The translations under genes were made by a program, and so were the position numbers. Shown here piece after piece: positions 34,332-62,420 of a DNA stretch of 64,000 nt. This DNA is from Diadema antillarum (Eukaryota): assembly GCF_040938485.1 (NCBI RefSeq), contig NW_027272364.1, positions 62,001-126,000 of the forward strand, written 5' to 3'. Under the pieces are notes generated by a model. That model was not told the origin of the DNA. It worked only from the letters and a program-made list of their open reading frames with translations, and ran no database searches. Numbering within the stretch: position 1 is the stretch's first letter; every line of letters begins with the position of its first letter.

Positions 34332-34621
34332 TTATGTTGAGCAAAATGAATGAAACTTCCAGTCCCCCTCTGAACCGAATCCGGTCCAAATTCCAATATA
34401 GTTGATTTGTGTAGTGAGCGGGTCAGCCACGTCCATGAGGGGAACATCGTTGCCATAGTGACCGATCTTCAGACGACCATCGGCGAAGTCGAGCCAAAAA
34501 CGATCGAAAGTAGGCCGTCCGGACAGGATCAGTGTTGGATAACGGTTCGGGTAGGAACAATCATCCCAAGGCTGAAGACAAAACCGTATGCCTCCGTGTG
34601 TGTTTCGCCAGCCTCCAATTG
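34332..34621 (-). CDS. Exon 22 (last): Methyltransf_FA-like domain, C-terminal half
   Basis: [16 protein letters not shown]...IG..G...M...DP....INYIG..TG.GSEG.W, then TAA. Confidence 0.85.
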
Positions 34622-61909: not shown

Positions 61910-62420
61910 GTGGGGGTGAGAGGGAGGGGCGTCATTGAAGGATATCGGCTTTAGCGGGCGAAGAACTTGTCTTTTAAGCTTCTCAATTCGATTTTCATGT
62001 TATTAAACGACAAAATGGAAAAGAAAAATAGCCCACATAGACGTACTTCCAGTGTTCCGATTTTAACGTCAATAACGAGCTTGAAATGTTCTTTTCGACA
62101 TCTGTTATGTATGTTTCATTTTACCGTAAAGAAGTGCAATTAAAGGAACGACAAAAAGAAAGCTGATTAATTTACGAGAGTATACTGTACACTATAGACC
62201 TACTTACAACTTTGTTCATATTTGCTGCAGTTGGTTCCACCTCGGCACGCCCTTGGTTGTGCACCTCAACGAGCTCTGCGATCTCCCCAGCCGCCAAGGC
62301 CGGCACCAGCTCTGCGTCGCTGTACCCTCCTTCATGGTAGGCCAGTGAGCATGGTACCCACCACACCATCAGCATGGAGCAATATACACCAAACATGCCC
62401 AACAAAATTAAACTTCCCAT
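34332..62420 (-). CDS. 22-exon gene for a secreted mosaic protein (1,141 aa): signal peptide - CAP/SCP - EGF-like/cbEGF array with S/T/P linker - ShKT - 3x group-A SRCR - farnesoic-acid O-methyltransferase-like domain
   Basis: Manual splicing with GT-AG sites and consistent intron phases gives 3,426 nt, with no internal stop and TAA at 34334-34332. Exons are listed individually below. Confidence 0.85.
36040..36210 (-). CDS. Exon 21: Methyltransf_FA-like domain, N-terminal half
   Basis: [14 protein letters not shown]...MYEL; TAG acceptor, G|GTGAGA donor, phase 1-1. Confidence 0.85.
37161..37395. mobile_element. ~235-bp Harbinger-like MITE
   Basis: TIRs (G)GGTCCGTTTCAT / ATGAAACAGACCC, CWG-type flanks (CAG/CTG). 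Confidence 0.55.
37511..37973. mobile_element. ~460-bp MITE (Harbinger-like)
   Basis: Left GGCTCTAATTCACGAAGG..GGTATTGAAACCATG matches the reverse complement of right CATGGTTTCAATACCCTTCGTGAATTCGGGCCC. Confidence 0.6.
38691..38892 (-). CDS. Exon 20: SRCR3 second half
   Basis: VVCKQLGF...[10 protein letters not shown]...C...[13 protein letters not shown]; phase 0-1. Confidence 0.9.
39547..39671 (-). CDS. Exon 19: SRCR3 first half
   Basis: LRLADG..EGRVEI...[15 protein letters not shown]; phase 1-0. Confidence 0.9.
41089..41302 (-). CDS. Exon 18: SRCR2 second half
   Basis: VACKQLGF...[24 protein letters not shown]; phase 0-1. Confidence 0.9.
41444..41524 (-). mobile_element. RTE-type LINE 3' stub
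   Basis: Reads [15 protein letters not shown] (DRxxW motif), followed by a (TAAGTC/T)n tail. Confidence 0.5.
41848..41972 (-). CDS. Exon 17: SRCR2 first half; absent from the ORF track
   Basis: [42 protein letters not shown]; CAG acceptor, GTAAAC donor. Confidence 0.9.
42525..43669 (-). mobile_element. ~1.15-kb non-autonomous Helentron (DINE-1/HINE-like)
   Basis: 5' subTIR TATGCCTCCGCC inside a palindrome, then (GTCC)n (43583-43618), a TGACCTTTGACC-rich interior, 3' subTIR GGTGGAGGCATA, stem-loop GTCGC-CATA-GCGAC and end ATTTCTAG-TTTT. Confidence 0.8.
44698..44908 (-). CDS. Exon 16: SRCR1 second half
   Basis: VVCRQLNIG...[26 protein letters not shown]; phase 0-1. Confidence 0.9.
45413..45540 (-). 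CDS. Exon 15: SRCR1 first half
   Basis: [27 protein letters not shown]; phase 1-0. Confidence 0.9.
45672..46667. mobile_element. ~1-kb PIF/Harbinger-like non-autonomous element
   Basis: TIRs AGCCTCTCTTACATCCCGTCGTGCGTG / CACGCACGACCGGATGTAAGAGAGCCT, perfect TAA TSD (45669-45671, 46668-46670), interior rich in CGTAAG/CGTGC motifs. Confidence 0.8.
47247..47772. mobile_element. Degenerate TTAA-type MITE
   Basis: Left TTAAAGTCACCCCTGA and right TCAGGGTGGAATTCCCC(A)TTTA; a similar right end occurs at ~1019-1039. Confidence 0.35.
47877..47981 (-). CDS. Exon 14: ShKT (ShK toxin-like) domain; absent from the ORF track
   Basis: [34 protein letters not shown] (6 Cys, terminal CPxxCxxC); TAG acceptor, A|GTAAGT donor, 105 nt, phase 1-1. 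Confidence 0.85.
48612..49217. mobile_element. Dimer of abutting, inverted Tc1/mariner-like MITE copies (deleted copy 48612-48777, full copy 48778-49217)
   Basis: CAGT..GTCCCAAAA..TTACAA-type TIRs at all four ends and TA on both outer flanks. 48650-48770 is the reverse complement of 48790-48905. Confidence 0.75.
49675..49767 (-). CDS. Exon 13: EGF-like
   Basis: [31 protein letters not shown]; 93 nt, phase 1-1. Confidence 0.9.
50502..50627 (-). CDS. Exon 12: EGF-like
   Basis: [12 protein letters not shown]...[16 protein letters not shown]; 126 nt, phase 1-1; donor GTGTGT is weaker. Confidence 0.8.
50821..50938 (+). mobile_element. RTE/RTE-X LINE 3' stub
   Basis: [27 protein letters not shown] (L..DTG...AM.DR..W motif), followed by a TAAGCAAG repeat tail. 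Confidence 0.65.
51725..51970. mobile_element. Internally repetitive foldback MITE remnant, copy 1
   Basis: Right end TCGTGGGTGTCGAACCCGTGACGTGCA; left part GACACCCACGAGTCATACAG is its reverse complement. Shared with 53110-53511. Confidence 0.5.
52226..52321 (-). CDS. Exon 11: atypical 4-Cys module
   Basis: [32 protein letters not shown]; good acceptor (TTCCCAACAG), G|GTAAAT donor, 96 nt, phase 1-1. Confidence 0.7.
53110..53511. mobile_element. Internally repetitive foldback MITE remnant, copy 2
   Basis: Repeated GAGTCATACAG / GTTCGACACT / CCCATGAG units; right end TCGTGGGTGTCGAACTCGTGACGTGCAC. Confidence 0.5.
53525..53629 (-). CDS. Exon 10: EGF-like
   Basis: [34 protein letters not shown]; 105 nt, phase 1-1. 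Confidence 0.88.
54612..54740 (-). CDS. Exon 9: calcium-binding EGF
   Basis: DIDEC...C.N.PGSYRC..CP.GF; 129 nt, phase 1-1. Confidence 0.92.
54755..54843. repeat. Inverted duplication of a tRNA/SINE T-arm fragment forming an 89-nt hairpin
   Basis: 26-bp arms ACTCGAGCAGGATTCGAACCTACGAC / GTCGTAGGTTCAAATCCTGCTCGAGT (1 mismatch), each with a B-box-like GGTTCRAATCC. Confidence 0.8.
55559..55939 (-). CDS. Exon 8: cbEGF + Ser/Thr/Pro-rich linker + EGF-like
   Basis: [26 protein letters not shown]...[10 protein letters not shown]...[16 protein letters not shown]; 381 nt, phase 1-1. Confidence 0.92.
56385..57052. mobile_element. 668-bp foldback MITE (Tc1/mariner-like, TA TSD) with a central (GT)n loop
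   Basis: TIR CCGGGTGTCCCAAAAAAAGCGGAACGGTGGATTTTCAGTACCTTGCG; arms stay complementary for ~290 bp up to the (GT)n tract at ~56703-56760. Confidence 0.9.
57412..57528 (-). CDS. Exon 7: EGF-like
   Basis: CILKCGDP...[20 protein letters not shown]; 117 nt, phase 1-1. Confidence 0.85.
57942..58073 (-). CDS. Exon 6: Cys-rich/EGF-like
   Basis: [43 protein letters not shown]; 132 nt, phase 1-1. Confidence 0.82.
58507..58604 (-). CDS. Exon 5: CAP hinge
   Basis: [19 protein letters not shown]; phase 2-1. Confidence 0.88.
59164..59285 (-). CDS. Exon 4: CAP domain
   Basis: FTWA..EEIGCA..LC....YYWKCNYYP (CAP IGC and CNYxP motifs); phase 0-2. Confidence 0.9.
59827..59946 (-). CDS. Exon 3: CAP domain; absent from the ORF track
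   Basis: [40 protein letters not shown]; TTACAG acceptor, GTGAGT donor, phase 0-0. Confidence 0.85.
60556..60787. mobile_element. CACTA-like MITE
   Basis: CACTAGAGGAGACT ... AGTCTCCGCTAGTTG termini with subterminal GGAGAC/GTCTCC motifs; TSD imperfect. Confidence 0.55.
61126..61248 (-). CDS. Exon 2: CAP domain; absent from the ORF track
   Basis: [41 protein letters not shown]; CCAG acceptor, GTATGC donor, phase 0-0. Confidence 0.85.
62208..62420 (-). CDS. Exon 1: signal peptide + start of CAP domain
   Basis: Hydrophobic [27 protein letters not shown], then [22 protein letters not shown] (HNxxR..AxNM motif); GTAAGT donor. Confidence 0.88.

Follow-up and report, generated by a model that had tools for sequence, protein, structure and literature searches.

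Several described proteins resemble parts of the gene analysed here, which lies within a stretch of 64,000 nucleotides of the Diadema antillarum genome (the window). The human CLEC18A, CLEC18B and CLEC18C proteins are similar in that they combine an N-terminal CAP domain, EGF modules and a C-terminal domain of the carbohydrate-recognition type. Polymorphism of both the lectin and the CAP domain has been described for CLEC18, as has a function in innate recognition (PMC7893028). The head of CLEC18 is a CTLD, whereas the sea urchin mosaic protein is predicted to end in a galectin-fold, farnesoic acid O-methyltransferase-like (FAMeT-like) domain, and its exon translations gave no Pfam match to Lectin_C. 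In length the mosaic protein exceeds CLEC18 by a factor of 2.5, and it contains about nine EGF-like modules, three SRCR domains, a mucin-like linker and degenerate CAP motifs. The likeness is one of layout only and implies no orthology. Proteins of the CRISP family consist of CAP, a hinge and a ShK-like ion-channel-regulatory domain. The predicted CAP domain of the mosaic protein likewise leads into a Cys-rich, hinge-like segment, and a six-Cys, ShKT-like module is present elsewhere in the protein, but this module comes after the EGF array, about 400 residues further on, and the CAP signature residues are lost. Echinoderm DMBT1/SRCR mosaics, such as the DMBT1-like protein of the crown-of-thorns starfish (PMC10448888), are secreted and join SRCR domains to calcium-binding EGF (cbEGF) and other binding modules, as is the case here. 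The described examples lack a CAP or FAMeT-like domain. The SRCRs of the mosaic protein have six Cys and are spread over two exons each.

By sequence, the C-terminal domain comes closest (45-59% identity) to that of echinoid EGF-FAMeT-like proteins, for example Diadema setosum XP_072172015 (P0012), Lytechinus variegatus XP_041453194 (P0014) and a L. pictus 'mucin-2-like' protein (P0020). They share domain boundaries with the mosaic gene, including a Cys-x3-(H/Y)TPDV lead-in, but are short (129-672 aa) with an EGF immediately before the domain, and none has CAP or SRCR. Their NCBI name is often 'CPAMD8'. Methyltransf_FA and SRCR domains are combined, as in the mosaic protein, in an Anneissia japonica adhesion GPCR (P0074; FAMeT-like, four SRCRs, GPS, 7tm_2) and an Amphiura filiformis protein (P0054; FAMeT-like, WSC, SRCR). 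In these two proteins, the order is reversed with the FAMeT-like domain before SRCR, there is no CAP or EGF array, the FAMeT-like domain is 31-36% identical to that of the mosaic protein, and one of the two is membrane-anchored.

We propose, with a probability of about 0.55, that the window contains one gene for a secreted, disulfide-rich mosaic glycoprotein with a role in soluble, multivalent binding or pattern recognition. From the N-terminus, a signal peptide is predicted to precede a degenerate CAP domain and its CRISP-type hinge. An array of about nine modules, EGF-like or cbEGF, comes next and is broken by a mucin-like linker; it is followed by a ShKT-like module with six Cys, three SRCRs of group A type and a C-terminal, galectin-like 'Methyltransf_FA' domain. 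The minus-strand model was rebuilt independently from minus-strand ORF seeds and phase-consistent GT-AG junctions. This yielded 22 exons, all joined through AG acceptors and GT donors in consistent phases, and a CDS of 3,426 nt with a start ATG at 62420 and a sole, terminal stop at 34332-34334 (minus strand). The predicted protein of 1,141 aa is equal in length to that of the initial annotation, whose uninterrupted reading frame and module order are also reproduced. The features are as follows:

62208..62420, minus strand: exon 1, aa 1-71; contains the start ATG, the predicted signal peptide and the predicted first CAP helix with HNxxR motif
62340-62420, minus strand: signal peptide, aa 1-27, predicted from hydropathy
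61126..61248, minus strand: exon 2, aa 72-112; predicted CAP, phase 0-0
59827..59946, minus strand: exon 3, aa 113-152; predicted CAP, CNMYK at the GHYTQ position
59164..59285, minus strand: exon 4, aa 153-193; predicted C-terminal CAP segment, contains a degenerate CAP2 motif (around CNYYP)
58507..58604, minus strand: exon 5, aa 194-225; Cys-rich segment with 4 Cys, resembles a CRISP-type hinge
57942..58073, minus strand: exon 6, aa 226-269; 8-Cys EGF-like module, phase 1-1, no Pfam match
57412..57528, minus strand: exon 7, aa 270-308; 6-Cys EGF-like module, phase 1-1, no Pfam match
55559..55939, minus strand: exon 8, aa 309-435; calcium-binding EGF, mucin-like linker and EGF-like module
55665-55823, minus strand: Ser/Thr/Pro-rich mucin-like linker in exon 8, aa 348-400, 56% S+T+P
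54612..54740, minus strand: exon 9, aa 436-478; calcium-binding EGF
53525..53629, minus strand: exon 10, aa 479-513; EGF-like, 6 Cys, EGF_2 and EGF_C8A sub-threshold
52226..52321, minus strand: exon 11, aa 514-545; 4-Cys module, no Pfam match, ShK profile 0.8 bits
50502..50627, minus strand: exon 12, aa 546-587; 6-Cys EGF-like module, no Pfam match
49675..49767, minus strand: exon 13, aa 588-618; EGF-like, EGF_2 sub-threshold (E 0.008)
47877..47981, minus strand: exon 14, aa 619-653; module of six Cys, spaced in a ShKT-like manner
45413..45540, minus strand: exon 15, aa 654-696; N-terminal third of SRCR1, 36.6 bits, profile positions 2-32
44698..44908, minus strand: exon 16, aa 697-766; C-terminal two thirds of SRCR1, 49.9 bits, profile positions 34-100
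41848..41972, minus strand: exon 17, aa 767-808; N-terminal third of SRCR2, SRCR 36.6 bits
41089..41302, minus strand: exon 18, aa 809-879; C-terminal two thirds of SRCR2, SRCR 56.5 bits
39547..39671, minus strand: exon 19, aa 880-921; N-terminal third of SRCR3, SRCR 35.5 bits
38691..38892, minus strand: exon 20, aa 922-988; C-terminal two thirds of SRCR3, SRCR 61.4 bits
36040..36210, minus strand: exon 21, aa 989-1045; FAMeT-like (predicted galectin-fold) domain, first part
36137-36178, minus strand: variable patch 1 in exon 21, codons 1000-1013, clustered haplotype differences
34332..34621, minus strand: exon 22, aa 1046-1141 and stop; remainder of the FAMeT-like domain
34464-34610, minus strand: variable patch 2 in exon 22, codons 1050-1098, clustered haplotype differences

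The initial annotation had pointed out that exons 2, 3, 14 and 17 fall under the 60-aa cut-off; they are situated in ORFs of 53-59 aa. Exons 6-14 are all symmetric (phase 1-1), and a search across the whole window for additional domain-like exons outside the model found none. Exons 1 and 8 have no second copy elsewhere in the genome; a degenerate copy of exon 1 sits upstream. Hydropathy reaches its peak at residues 1-27 (Kyte-Doolittle, 19-residue mean 2.03) and is 1.37 or lower elsewhere, and the C-terminus is not hydrophobic. By hydropathy alone, the protein is therefore predicted to carry a signal peptide and neither a TM segment nor a GPI signal, in agreement with the secretion proposed earlier.

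Five domain families had been assigned to the protein. The exon translations pass Pfam for two cbEGFs, three SRCRs (both halves of each) and Methyltransf_FA, while CAP is retained in a degenerate form and the ShKT assignment is weak. No CAP (PF00188) match was obtained even at E <= 10 when the translations of exons 1-5 were searched one by one, and none of the 26 exon matches in a genome-wide PF00188 scan comes from the mosaic gene. Indirect support is provided by four segments that resemble CAP in the same order, each line being weak alone. The sole PDB match of exon 1 was to residues 19-40 of GLIPR1, at the corresponding CAP position (E 1.3), and its top clusters in a language-model search all belong to PF00188. 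When joined, exons 2 and 3 give an end-to-end alignment (positions 2-79) to a profile of nine CAP exons from the same genome (13.6 bits, E 0.0075, higher than all 2,000 shuffles). At C120/C585, a bona fide CAP exon is followed by exons that phmmer matched, in corresponding positions, to exon 4 (E 1.2e-3) and exon 5 (E 3e-4 to 7e-4); CAP clusters also made up 94 of the 100 nearest language-model clusters of exon 4 (score 0.91). Based on these four independent lines, the predicted CAP domain is real but degenerate. CAP proteins are characterized by the motifs CAP1 (GHYTQ..W), CAP2, CAP3 (HNxxR) and CAP4 (G[EQ]N). HNxxR alone is intact in the mosaic protein and CAP2 is partly kept (CNYYP), and the alignment of exons 2 and 3 places VLQF at the GQN(L/I)W position and CNMYK at that of GHYTQ. 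Due to the loss of the CAP1 and CAP4 signature residues, an enzymatic role of the CAP domain, or the 'effector' role suggested by the initial annotation, is doubtful.

EGF_CA (PF07645, cut-off 27) is matched by exons 8 and 9 with 35.3 and 35.2 bits, respectively, exon 8 additionally matches FXa_inhibition (43.6 bits), and both cbEGFs begin with D-V/I-D-E-C, which is read across a phase-1 junction. The six SRCR half-domains score between 35.5 and 61.4 bits (PF00530, cut-off 26.1) over profile positions 2-33 and 34-100, and each SRCR has six Cys, distributed 1+5 on two exons. Group A SRCRs are defined by six Cys and a domain split over two exons, and the three SRCRs are of this type. The closest other SRCR exons, which are 59-66% identical to exon 20, belong to unrelated SRCR arrays. 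The ShKT identity of exon 14 is weak and depends on cysteine spacing and language-model features: its spacing of C-x6-C-x7-C-x9-C-x3-C-x2-C compares with x6/x8/x10/x3/x2 in two ShK exons of the same genome, and ShK clusters ranked top in a language-model search (0.92, 189 shared features). Exon 14 had no match to Pfam ShK (PF01549) at E <= 10, is absent among the 92 genome-wide ShK matches and is without the conserved ShK D, W and M residues, and a ShK profile built from the same genome gave 2.0 bits, which was equalled by 14% of Cys-fixed shuffles.

The C-terminal domain matches Methyltransf_FA (PF12248, cut-off 24.2) with 44.0 bits in exon 22 (profile positions 52-137), and exon 21 gives a contiguous match of 21.6 bits (positions 18-50). 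The identity to a Diadema setosum homologue is 55% for exon 21 and 51% for exon 22, and the fold searches were performed with a model of a homologue 51-55% identical (pLDDT 87.5) and not with the window's own spliced domain. In an exhaustive structural search with this model, galectin CRDs took the top 15 ranks (Z 11.3-13.0, rmsd 2.5-3.1 A), with alignments covering 119-128 of 137 residues at 6-16% identity. Foldseek agrees with a galectin fold (TM up to 0.67), and no methyltransferases were among the top-50 matches of either search. The initial annotation's farnesoic acid O-methyltransferase-like domain is thus upheld as a Pfam match, but as modelled it folds into a galectin-like sandwich that is all beta, which gives no support to a methyltransferase enzyme. 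For the arthropod FAMeT, methyltransferase activity has never been reliably demonstrated (PMC10015273). As modelled, the 'Methyltransf_FA' domain is a misnamed galectin-like beta-sandwich and, since the fold is galectin-like, it is probably a binding module unrelated to methyl transfer, although a common fold does not establish its function. The modelled domain shares the beta-sandwich topology of galectins over about 90% of its length. It differs from them in that there is no detectable sequence relationship (a search of PDB chains with the domain profile gave no match at E <= 1) and in being disulfide-bonded and extracellular via a signal peptide.

The initial annotation knew of no described protein that joins all of these families and proposed an architecture search. 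With the FAMeT-like domain as its anchor, an exhaustive search retrieved 121 relatives among 1.84 billion representatives, none of which has the same architecture or joins all families. The nearest relatives are the EGF-FAMeT proteins of Diadema and Lytechinus. FAMeT-like and SRCR domains occur together in only two of the relatives found, the crinoid and brittle star proteins described above, and in other deuterostomes the module adjoins C-type lectin, PAN, TSP1, WSC, ZP and SRCR domains. The claim that the complete combination is undescribed is supported by this search, but is tempered by the FAMeT-SRCR proteins of other echinoderms and the CAP-EGF-lectin layout of human CLEC18. As the host genome contains at least 150 FAMeT-like exons (paralogous matches to exon 22) and a hugely expanded SRCR family with about 2,000 exon candidates, a unique permutation is less surprising than it had seemed; the combination is unusual, yet fits rampant module shuffling in echinoderm genomes.

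The locus is assembled a second time at C277:619428-651768, where 22 of 22 exons occur with identical lengths, together with an intact frame of 1,141 codons and the same module order and spacing, and 42 splice dinucleotides are kept in both copies. The CDS is 97.2% identical compared to 93.5% for the introns (exon 1 97%, exon 6 98%, exon 20 99%), and the upstream flank is collinear with 94.6% identity. We conclude that the locus is a real, single-copy gene, which is present as two haplotypes in the assembly. Between the haplotypes, dN/dS is 0.32 overall, 0.14 in the N-terminal half (17 synonymous versus 9 replacement changes) and 0.46 in the other half. The FAMeT-like domain holds 20 of the 46 amino acid differences, and its ratio of replacement to synonymous changes is 25:5 as compared to 27:39 elsewhere (Fisher p = 1.3e-4, two haplotypes). 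The differences cluster in the two variable patches, and codons 1099-1141 are nearly invariant. The dN of the domain (0.075) is not above neutral when set against the roughly 15% divergence of the introns and flank around its exons. Gene conversion from paralogues could account for the clusters, and some residues of the second haplotype do equal those of paralogues; the patches are also consistent with a polymorphic recognition surface, as judged from the two haplotypes compared. One might speculate that 'Methyltransf_FA' is an unrecognised galectin-fold lectin, forming an urchin-expanded recognition family and serving here as a polymorphic, diversifying head on a CAP-EGF-SRCR stalk. We consider this idea doubtful; if true, the gene would represent a new class of soluble pattern-recognition receptors that vary between alleles, in an animal that lacks adaptive immunity.

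For the gene as a whole, we hypothesize that shuffling of phase-1 exons brought together three sources: a CAP-EGF gene, an SRCR cassette and, from the EGF-FAMeT-like family of urchins, the terminal module. Ligand binding, probably to glycans or microbial surfaces, would be the task of the SRCRs and the lectin-fold head, with the calcium-binding EGF array and the putatively O-glycosylated linker serving as a rigid spacer. As its signature residues are lost, the CAP domain would have a binding or scaffold function and not a catalytic one.

This proposal has to be weighed against three other explanations. It seems highly improbable that the locus is silent or decaying, or an assembly chimaera with a fortuitous open frame: the degenerate exon 1 copy and transposon insertions in introns 1, 7 and 16, which differ between the haplotypes, would fit such a history, but two independently assembled haplotypes preserve the open codons, splice dinucleotides and exon lengths, and the N-terminal half shows the constraint described above. 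We also think it quite unlikely that two adjacent genes, CAP-EGF-ShKT-like (exons 1-14) and SRCR-FAMeT-like (exons 15-22), merely look spliceable through their shared phase 1. Such phase compatibility is generic for shuffled extracellular modules, so that a frame that stays open from exon 14 into exon 15 argues only weakly for a single gene; read-through of the exon 14 donor leads to a stop after three codons, making a short isoform possible, and neither the divergence between haplotypes nor the constraint is the same in the two halves. On the other hand, intron 14 is just 2.3 kb long, an ordinary size among the introns of this gene, and contains no AATAAA or ATTAAA. A crude scan of introns 13-14 found no candidate ATG-initiated, hydrophobic leader exon with a phase-1 donor, which would leave the SRCR part without a signal peptide, and order and spacing are shared by the haplotypes. 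We infer that exons 1-22 form one transcription unit.

A single gene could also serve a structural or developmental role, in the extracellular matrix, adhesion, biomineralisation or gamete interaction, instead of immune recognition. SRCR and EGF mosaics also work in adhesion, matrix and development, CAP proteins function in gamete interaction, and a cbEGF array with a mucin-like linker is typical of matrix proteins. The FAMeT-like module is moreover present in the crinoid adhesion GPCR and an amphioxus ZP-domain protein, and the abalone shell matrix proteome lists a Methyltransf_FA-domain protein with a secretion signal (PMC6003135). Three SRCRs next to a lectin-fold head, as well as the strong allelic divergence of the 3' cassette with its clustered replacements, fit recognition better, but are not decisive, and we regard a structural role as possible if somewhat unlikely. 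In the gene model, exon 15 has a second, equal-scoring acceptor 6 nt downstream (45534), which is a possible alternative splice site.

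Its sequence marks the minus-strand locus described here as a genuine gene under constraint, present in single copy and coding for a secreted mosaic protein. The strand carries a row of ORFs with CAP-, EGF-, SRCR- and FAMeT-like sequence. We built a gene model from 22 seed peptides by enumerating phase-compatible GT/AG pairs for each intron and choosing between junctions by splice-site score and by homology among the repeated modules. All 22 exons are bounded by AG acceptors and GT donors and give a CDS of 3,426 nt, which encodes 1,141 aa and ends in a single terminal stop; this independent rebuild has the same length as the uninterrupted 22-exon ORF proposed in the initial annotation. 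A tblastn search of the model against the whole window revealed no further domain-like exons outside it. Exons 2, 3, 14 and 17, previously said to fall under a 60-aa cut-off, indeed lie in ORFs of 53-59 aa, and because these four exons sit in such short ORFs, automated annotation could fragment the gene. The gene and the features in and next to it are as follows:

34332-62420, minus strand: 22-exon gene
61249-62207, minus strand: intron 1, 959 nt
55940-57411, minus strand: intron 7, 1,472 nt
54741-54800: tRNA/SINE-like stretch that abuts the exon 9 acceptor
45540 or 45534, minus strand: acceptor of exon 15, an ambiguity of two residues
41973-44697, minus strand: intron 16, 2,725 nt
36137-36178, minus strand: first variable patch of the FAMeT-like domain, codons 1000-1013
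34464-34610, minus strand: second variable patch, codons 1050-1098
33300-41800, minus strand: 3' third that is diverged between haplotypes
near 48100, 50400, 56700 and 61880: intronic (CA)n microsatellites

All exons from 6 to 14 belong to the symmetric phase class 1-1, and the exon pairs coding for the SRCR and FAMeT-like domains are in phase 1 at their outer edges. The predicted protein is strongly hydrophobic at residues 1-27 only (maximum elsewhere 1.37) and has a polar C-terminus, in line with the signal peptide and the lack of a transmembrane segment that had been claimed for it. It contains 94 cysteines (8.2%), the number of which is even across exons 5-14, and three N-glycosylation sequons. 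An exon-1-like piece upstream was considered as an alternative first exon and rejected: it has no signal peptide, an in-frame stop lies just upstream of it and no other model exon is found within 30 kb upstream. This degenerate copy of exon 1 lies in the host assembly at G000:C1476:141009-141128, 15 kb past the high end of the window, and again at C277:604335-604451; in either haplotype, some 16.6 kb separate it from the gene downstream. It is 70% identical over aa 33-72, has no other model exon nearby and is probably the relic of a partial duplication.

Many loci are present twice in the assembly (1.75 Gb, 2,963 contigs), which therefore seems to include both haplotypes. A second copy of the gene is found on contig C277, with all 22 exons in order and of equal length, 42 of 42 splice dinucleotides kept and the 1,141-codon frame intact. 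The upstream flank is collinear and 94.6% identical, and introns 1-16 are 93-99% identical. Divergence of this order is about the heterozygosity expected for a sea urchin, and we therefore read the two loci as alleles. Between them, the CDS is 97.2% identical compared with 93.5% for the introns, and the overall dN/dS of 0.32 falls to 0.14 in residues 1-653, where 17 differences are synonymous and 9 are replacements; we regard the locus as protein-coding and under constraint. Neither exon 1 nor exon 8 has a further copy in the genome, and the gene is thus single-copy. For many loci, two contigs carry near-identical versions, a pattern that points to an uncollapsed diploid assembly. Introns 1, 7 and 16 differ in length between the haplotypes, measuring 5,946, 813 and 1,592 nt, respectively, on C277, probably due to transposon insertions.

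The protein had been proposed to join five domain families, and when domain tests were run on the exon translations, exon by exon, three of these were firmly identified by Pfam, namely EGF, SRCR and Methyltransf_FA. Two calcium-binding EGF domains score 35.3 and 35.2 bits (cut-off 27), and the three SRCR domains each pass in two halves, covering profile positions 2-33 and 34-100, with 35.5-61.4 bits (cut-off 26.1). Each SRCR domain has six cysteines and is spread over two exons, which we take to be the group-A pattern. The EGF matches of exons 10 and 13 are below the Pfam threshold, and neither exons 6, 7 and 12, with six to eight cysteines each, nor the four-cysteine module of exon 11 have a Pfam match at E <= 10. 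Residues 348-400 form a mucin-like linker with 56% Ser/Thr/Pro. The CAP domain also stands, yet in a degenerate form. Its exons match no Pfam family exon by exon, even at E <= 10, and the gene is not among the matches of a genome-wide PF00188 scan. We accept the domain from the sequence comparisons because four collinear indirect lines agree: the sole PDB match of exon 1 is the equivalent N-terminal helix of GLIPR1 (E 1.3); residues 73-150 (exons 2 and 3) align end to end with a CAP profile made from nine exons of the same genome that pass PF00188 (13.6 bits, E 0.0075, a score that none of 2,000 shuffles reached); exons 4 and 5 resemble exons downstream of a bona fide CAP exon on contigs C120/C585 (E 3e-4 to 1.2e-3); and the language-model neighbours are CAP clusters for exon 1 (0.85) and exon 4 (0.91, 94 of 100 matches). 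The PDB matches of exons 2-5 (a LOV histidine kinase, a viral polymerase, none for exon 4 and bacterial fucose lectins) were set aside as chance. The HNxxR motif is retained, and VLQF stands at the GQN(L/I)W position and CNMYK at the GHYTQ position; due to these two alterations a role that needs the conserved CAP cavity appears unlikely. For exon 14, a ShKT-like assignment is only suggestive. Its six cysteines are spaced x6/x7/x9/x3/x2, close to the x6/x8/x10/x3/x2 of two ShK exons from the same genome, and ShK clusters top its language-model search (0.92, 189 shared features). The exon has no Pfam ShK match at E <= 10, is absent from the 92 genome-wide ShK matches and scores 2.0 bits on a profile of the genome's own ShK exons, a value equalled by 14% of cysteine-preserving shuffles.

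We propose that exons 1-22 form one transcription unit, with a probability of about 0.8. Alternatively, two adjacent genes might meet at intron 14, as phase-1 compatibility is generic and read-through from exon 14 stops after three codons. A separate SRCR gene would, however, be left without a signal peptide, and no ATG-initiated hydrophobic leader with a phase-1 donor was found in introns 13-14. Intron 14 itself is of ordinary size (2.3 kb, compared with 0.4-2.7 kb for the other introns) and contains no AATAAA or ATTAAA, which again argues for a single gene.

At the C-terminus, exon 21 covers positions 18-50 and exon 22 positions 52-137 of the Pfam Methyltransf_FA profile, the latter with 44.0 bits (cut-off 24.2). 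In an alignment of both exons with twelve relatives, the domain boundaries are common to the window and urchin proteins. The domain sequence matches no solved structure. The AlphaFold model of a Diadema setosum homologue, which is 51-55% identical to the window domain, is all-beta (pLDDT 87.5), and a Foldseek search of the PDB with this model returned galectins (TM up to 0.67) and GH16 glucanases. In an exhaustive structural alignment, ranks 1-15 were all galectin CRDs (Z 11.3-13.0, rmsd 2.5-3.1 A, 119-128 of 137 residues). Methyltransferase activity of FAMeT has never been reliably shown, and fly mutants have normal hormone levels (PMC10015273). The Methyltransf_FA domain is listed in secreted or extracellular proteins such as those of the abalone shell matrix (PMC6003135), and also in CPAMD8. 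Its partner domains among the matches are C-type lectin, PAN, TSP1, F5/8C, WSC, ZP, EGF and SRCR. Based on the galectin-like fold, the doubtful enzymatic activity and the extracellular hosts and partners, we read it as a shuffled extracellular binding module with a predicted lectin fold, a fold that by itself does not show sugar binding.

The two haplotypes differ most in the 3' third of the gene. Here, non-coding identity between the window and C277:643400-652800 drops to 83-85% between intron 17 and a point roughly 1 kb beyond the stop codon, with intron 19 not alignable, whereas identity is 93-99% in the 5' two thirds and on the promoter side. The cause could be a deep-rooted allelic lineage, or the cassette from SRCR2 to the FAMeT-like domain could have been replaced by paralogue-derived sequence. 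The FAMeT-like domain holds 20 of the 46 amino-acid differences, 13 per 100 residues compared with 1.3 in the N-terminal half, and its ratio of replacement to synonymous differences is 25:5 versus 27:39 elsewhere in the gene (Fisher p = 1.3e-4). The two variable patches together contain 28 nucleotide and 20 amino-acid differences, and codons 1014-1049 and 1099-1141 contain one nucleotide difference each. The second patch includes a cysteine-bracketed loop, which is the most variable part among the paralogues L003-L008 of the same genome and corresponds to a low-confidence loop in the homologue model. The raw dN/dS of 1.57 for the domain is no proof of positive selection, since synonymous counts are small and flanking non-coding divergence is about 0.16; with flanking non-coding DNA diverged by 15%, the domain's dN of 0.075 does not exceed the neutral level. 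Gene conversion competes with diversifying selection as an explanation of the patches, as some residues of the second haplotype match paralogues. From the module content, the fold and this allelic pattern, we infer that the product is most likely soluble and serves in multivalent recognition or binding, through its SRCR domains and its lectin-fold head. The diversification of innate immunity has a reference system in sea urchins, whose SRCR, TLR, NLR and 185/333 families are expanded. Provided that it is expressed, the gene would contribute a new pairing among receptors, of SRCR domains with a galectin-fold head, and the large, misnamed 'FAMeT/CPAMD8-like' family would become a candidate lectin repertoire.

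Exon 22 was the query of an exhaustive HMMER search over 1.84 billion representatives; this gave 121 relatives, each of which was compared with the full model. The closest come from Diadema antillarum, D. setosum, Lytechinus variegatus and L. pictus, followed by crinoid and amphioxus, with a best identity of 59%. The SRCR region is matched by only two of the 121, one an adhesion GPCR of a crinoid and the other a protein of a brittle star, and in both, unlike here, the FAMeT-like domain precedes the SRCR; the cbEGF region is matched by one amphioxus protein and the CAP region (residues 1-225) by none. No orthologue with this C-terminal cassette is visible among these FAMeT-like relatives, none of which joins all five families, in agreement with the earlier suggestion that no known protein does; a literature search that combined all the domain names retrieved no paper. 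Among named layouts, that of human CLEC18 (CAP-EGF-EGF-like-CTLD), a polymorphic innate receptor (PMC7893028), comes nearest. Both exon types are massively expanded in the genome: the FAMeT-like exon is matched at least 150 times, in clusters, and the SRCR exon has about 1,960 first-look candidates, including giant tandem arrays that repeat every 0.7-2.3 kb. Examples of these expansions are C727:510-690 kb, C254/C1148, C297:778-862 kb and C995:1-93 kb. The nearest FAMeT-like paralogues (77% identity) lie on contigs C727/C745 and have no close SRCR relatives beside them among the best 150 SRCR-exon matches, none of which falls on C727 or on C80, a further contig with a close FAMeT-like paralogue. 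An origin of the gene by exon shuffling would fit this separation. A unique permutation of phase-1 extracellular modules is expected in a genome so rich in them, and the gene belongs within a known kind of echinoderm SRCR mosaic proteins. Short urchin EGF-FAMeT-like proteins carry the NCBI names 'C3 and PZP-like alpha-2-macroglobulin domain-containing protein 8' or 'mucin-2-like' (P0008, P0012, P0016 and P0124 from Diadema, P0020 from Lytechinus pictus). These names probably derive from one shared domain and therefore say little of the proteins: P0012 and P0020 contain only EGF and Methyltransf_FA in Pfam, and P0008, P0016 and P0124 are 129-281 aa long, far shorter than CPAMD8.
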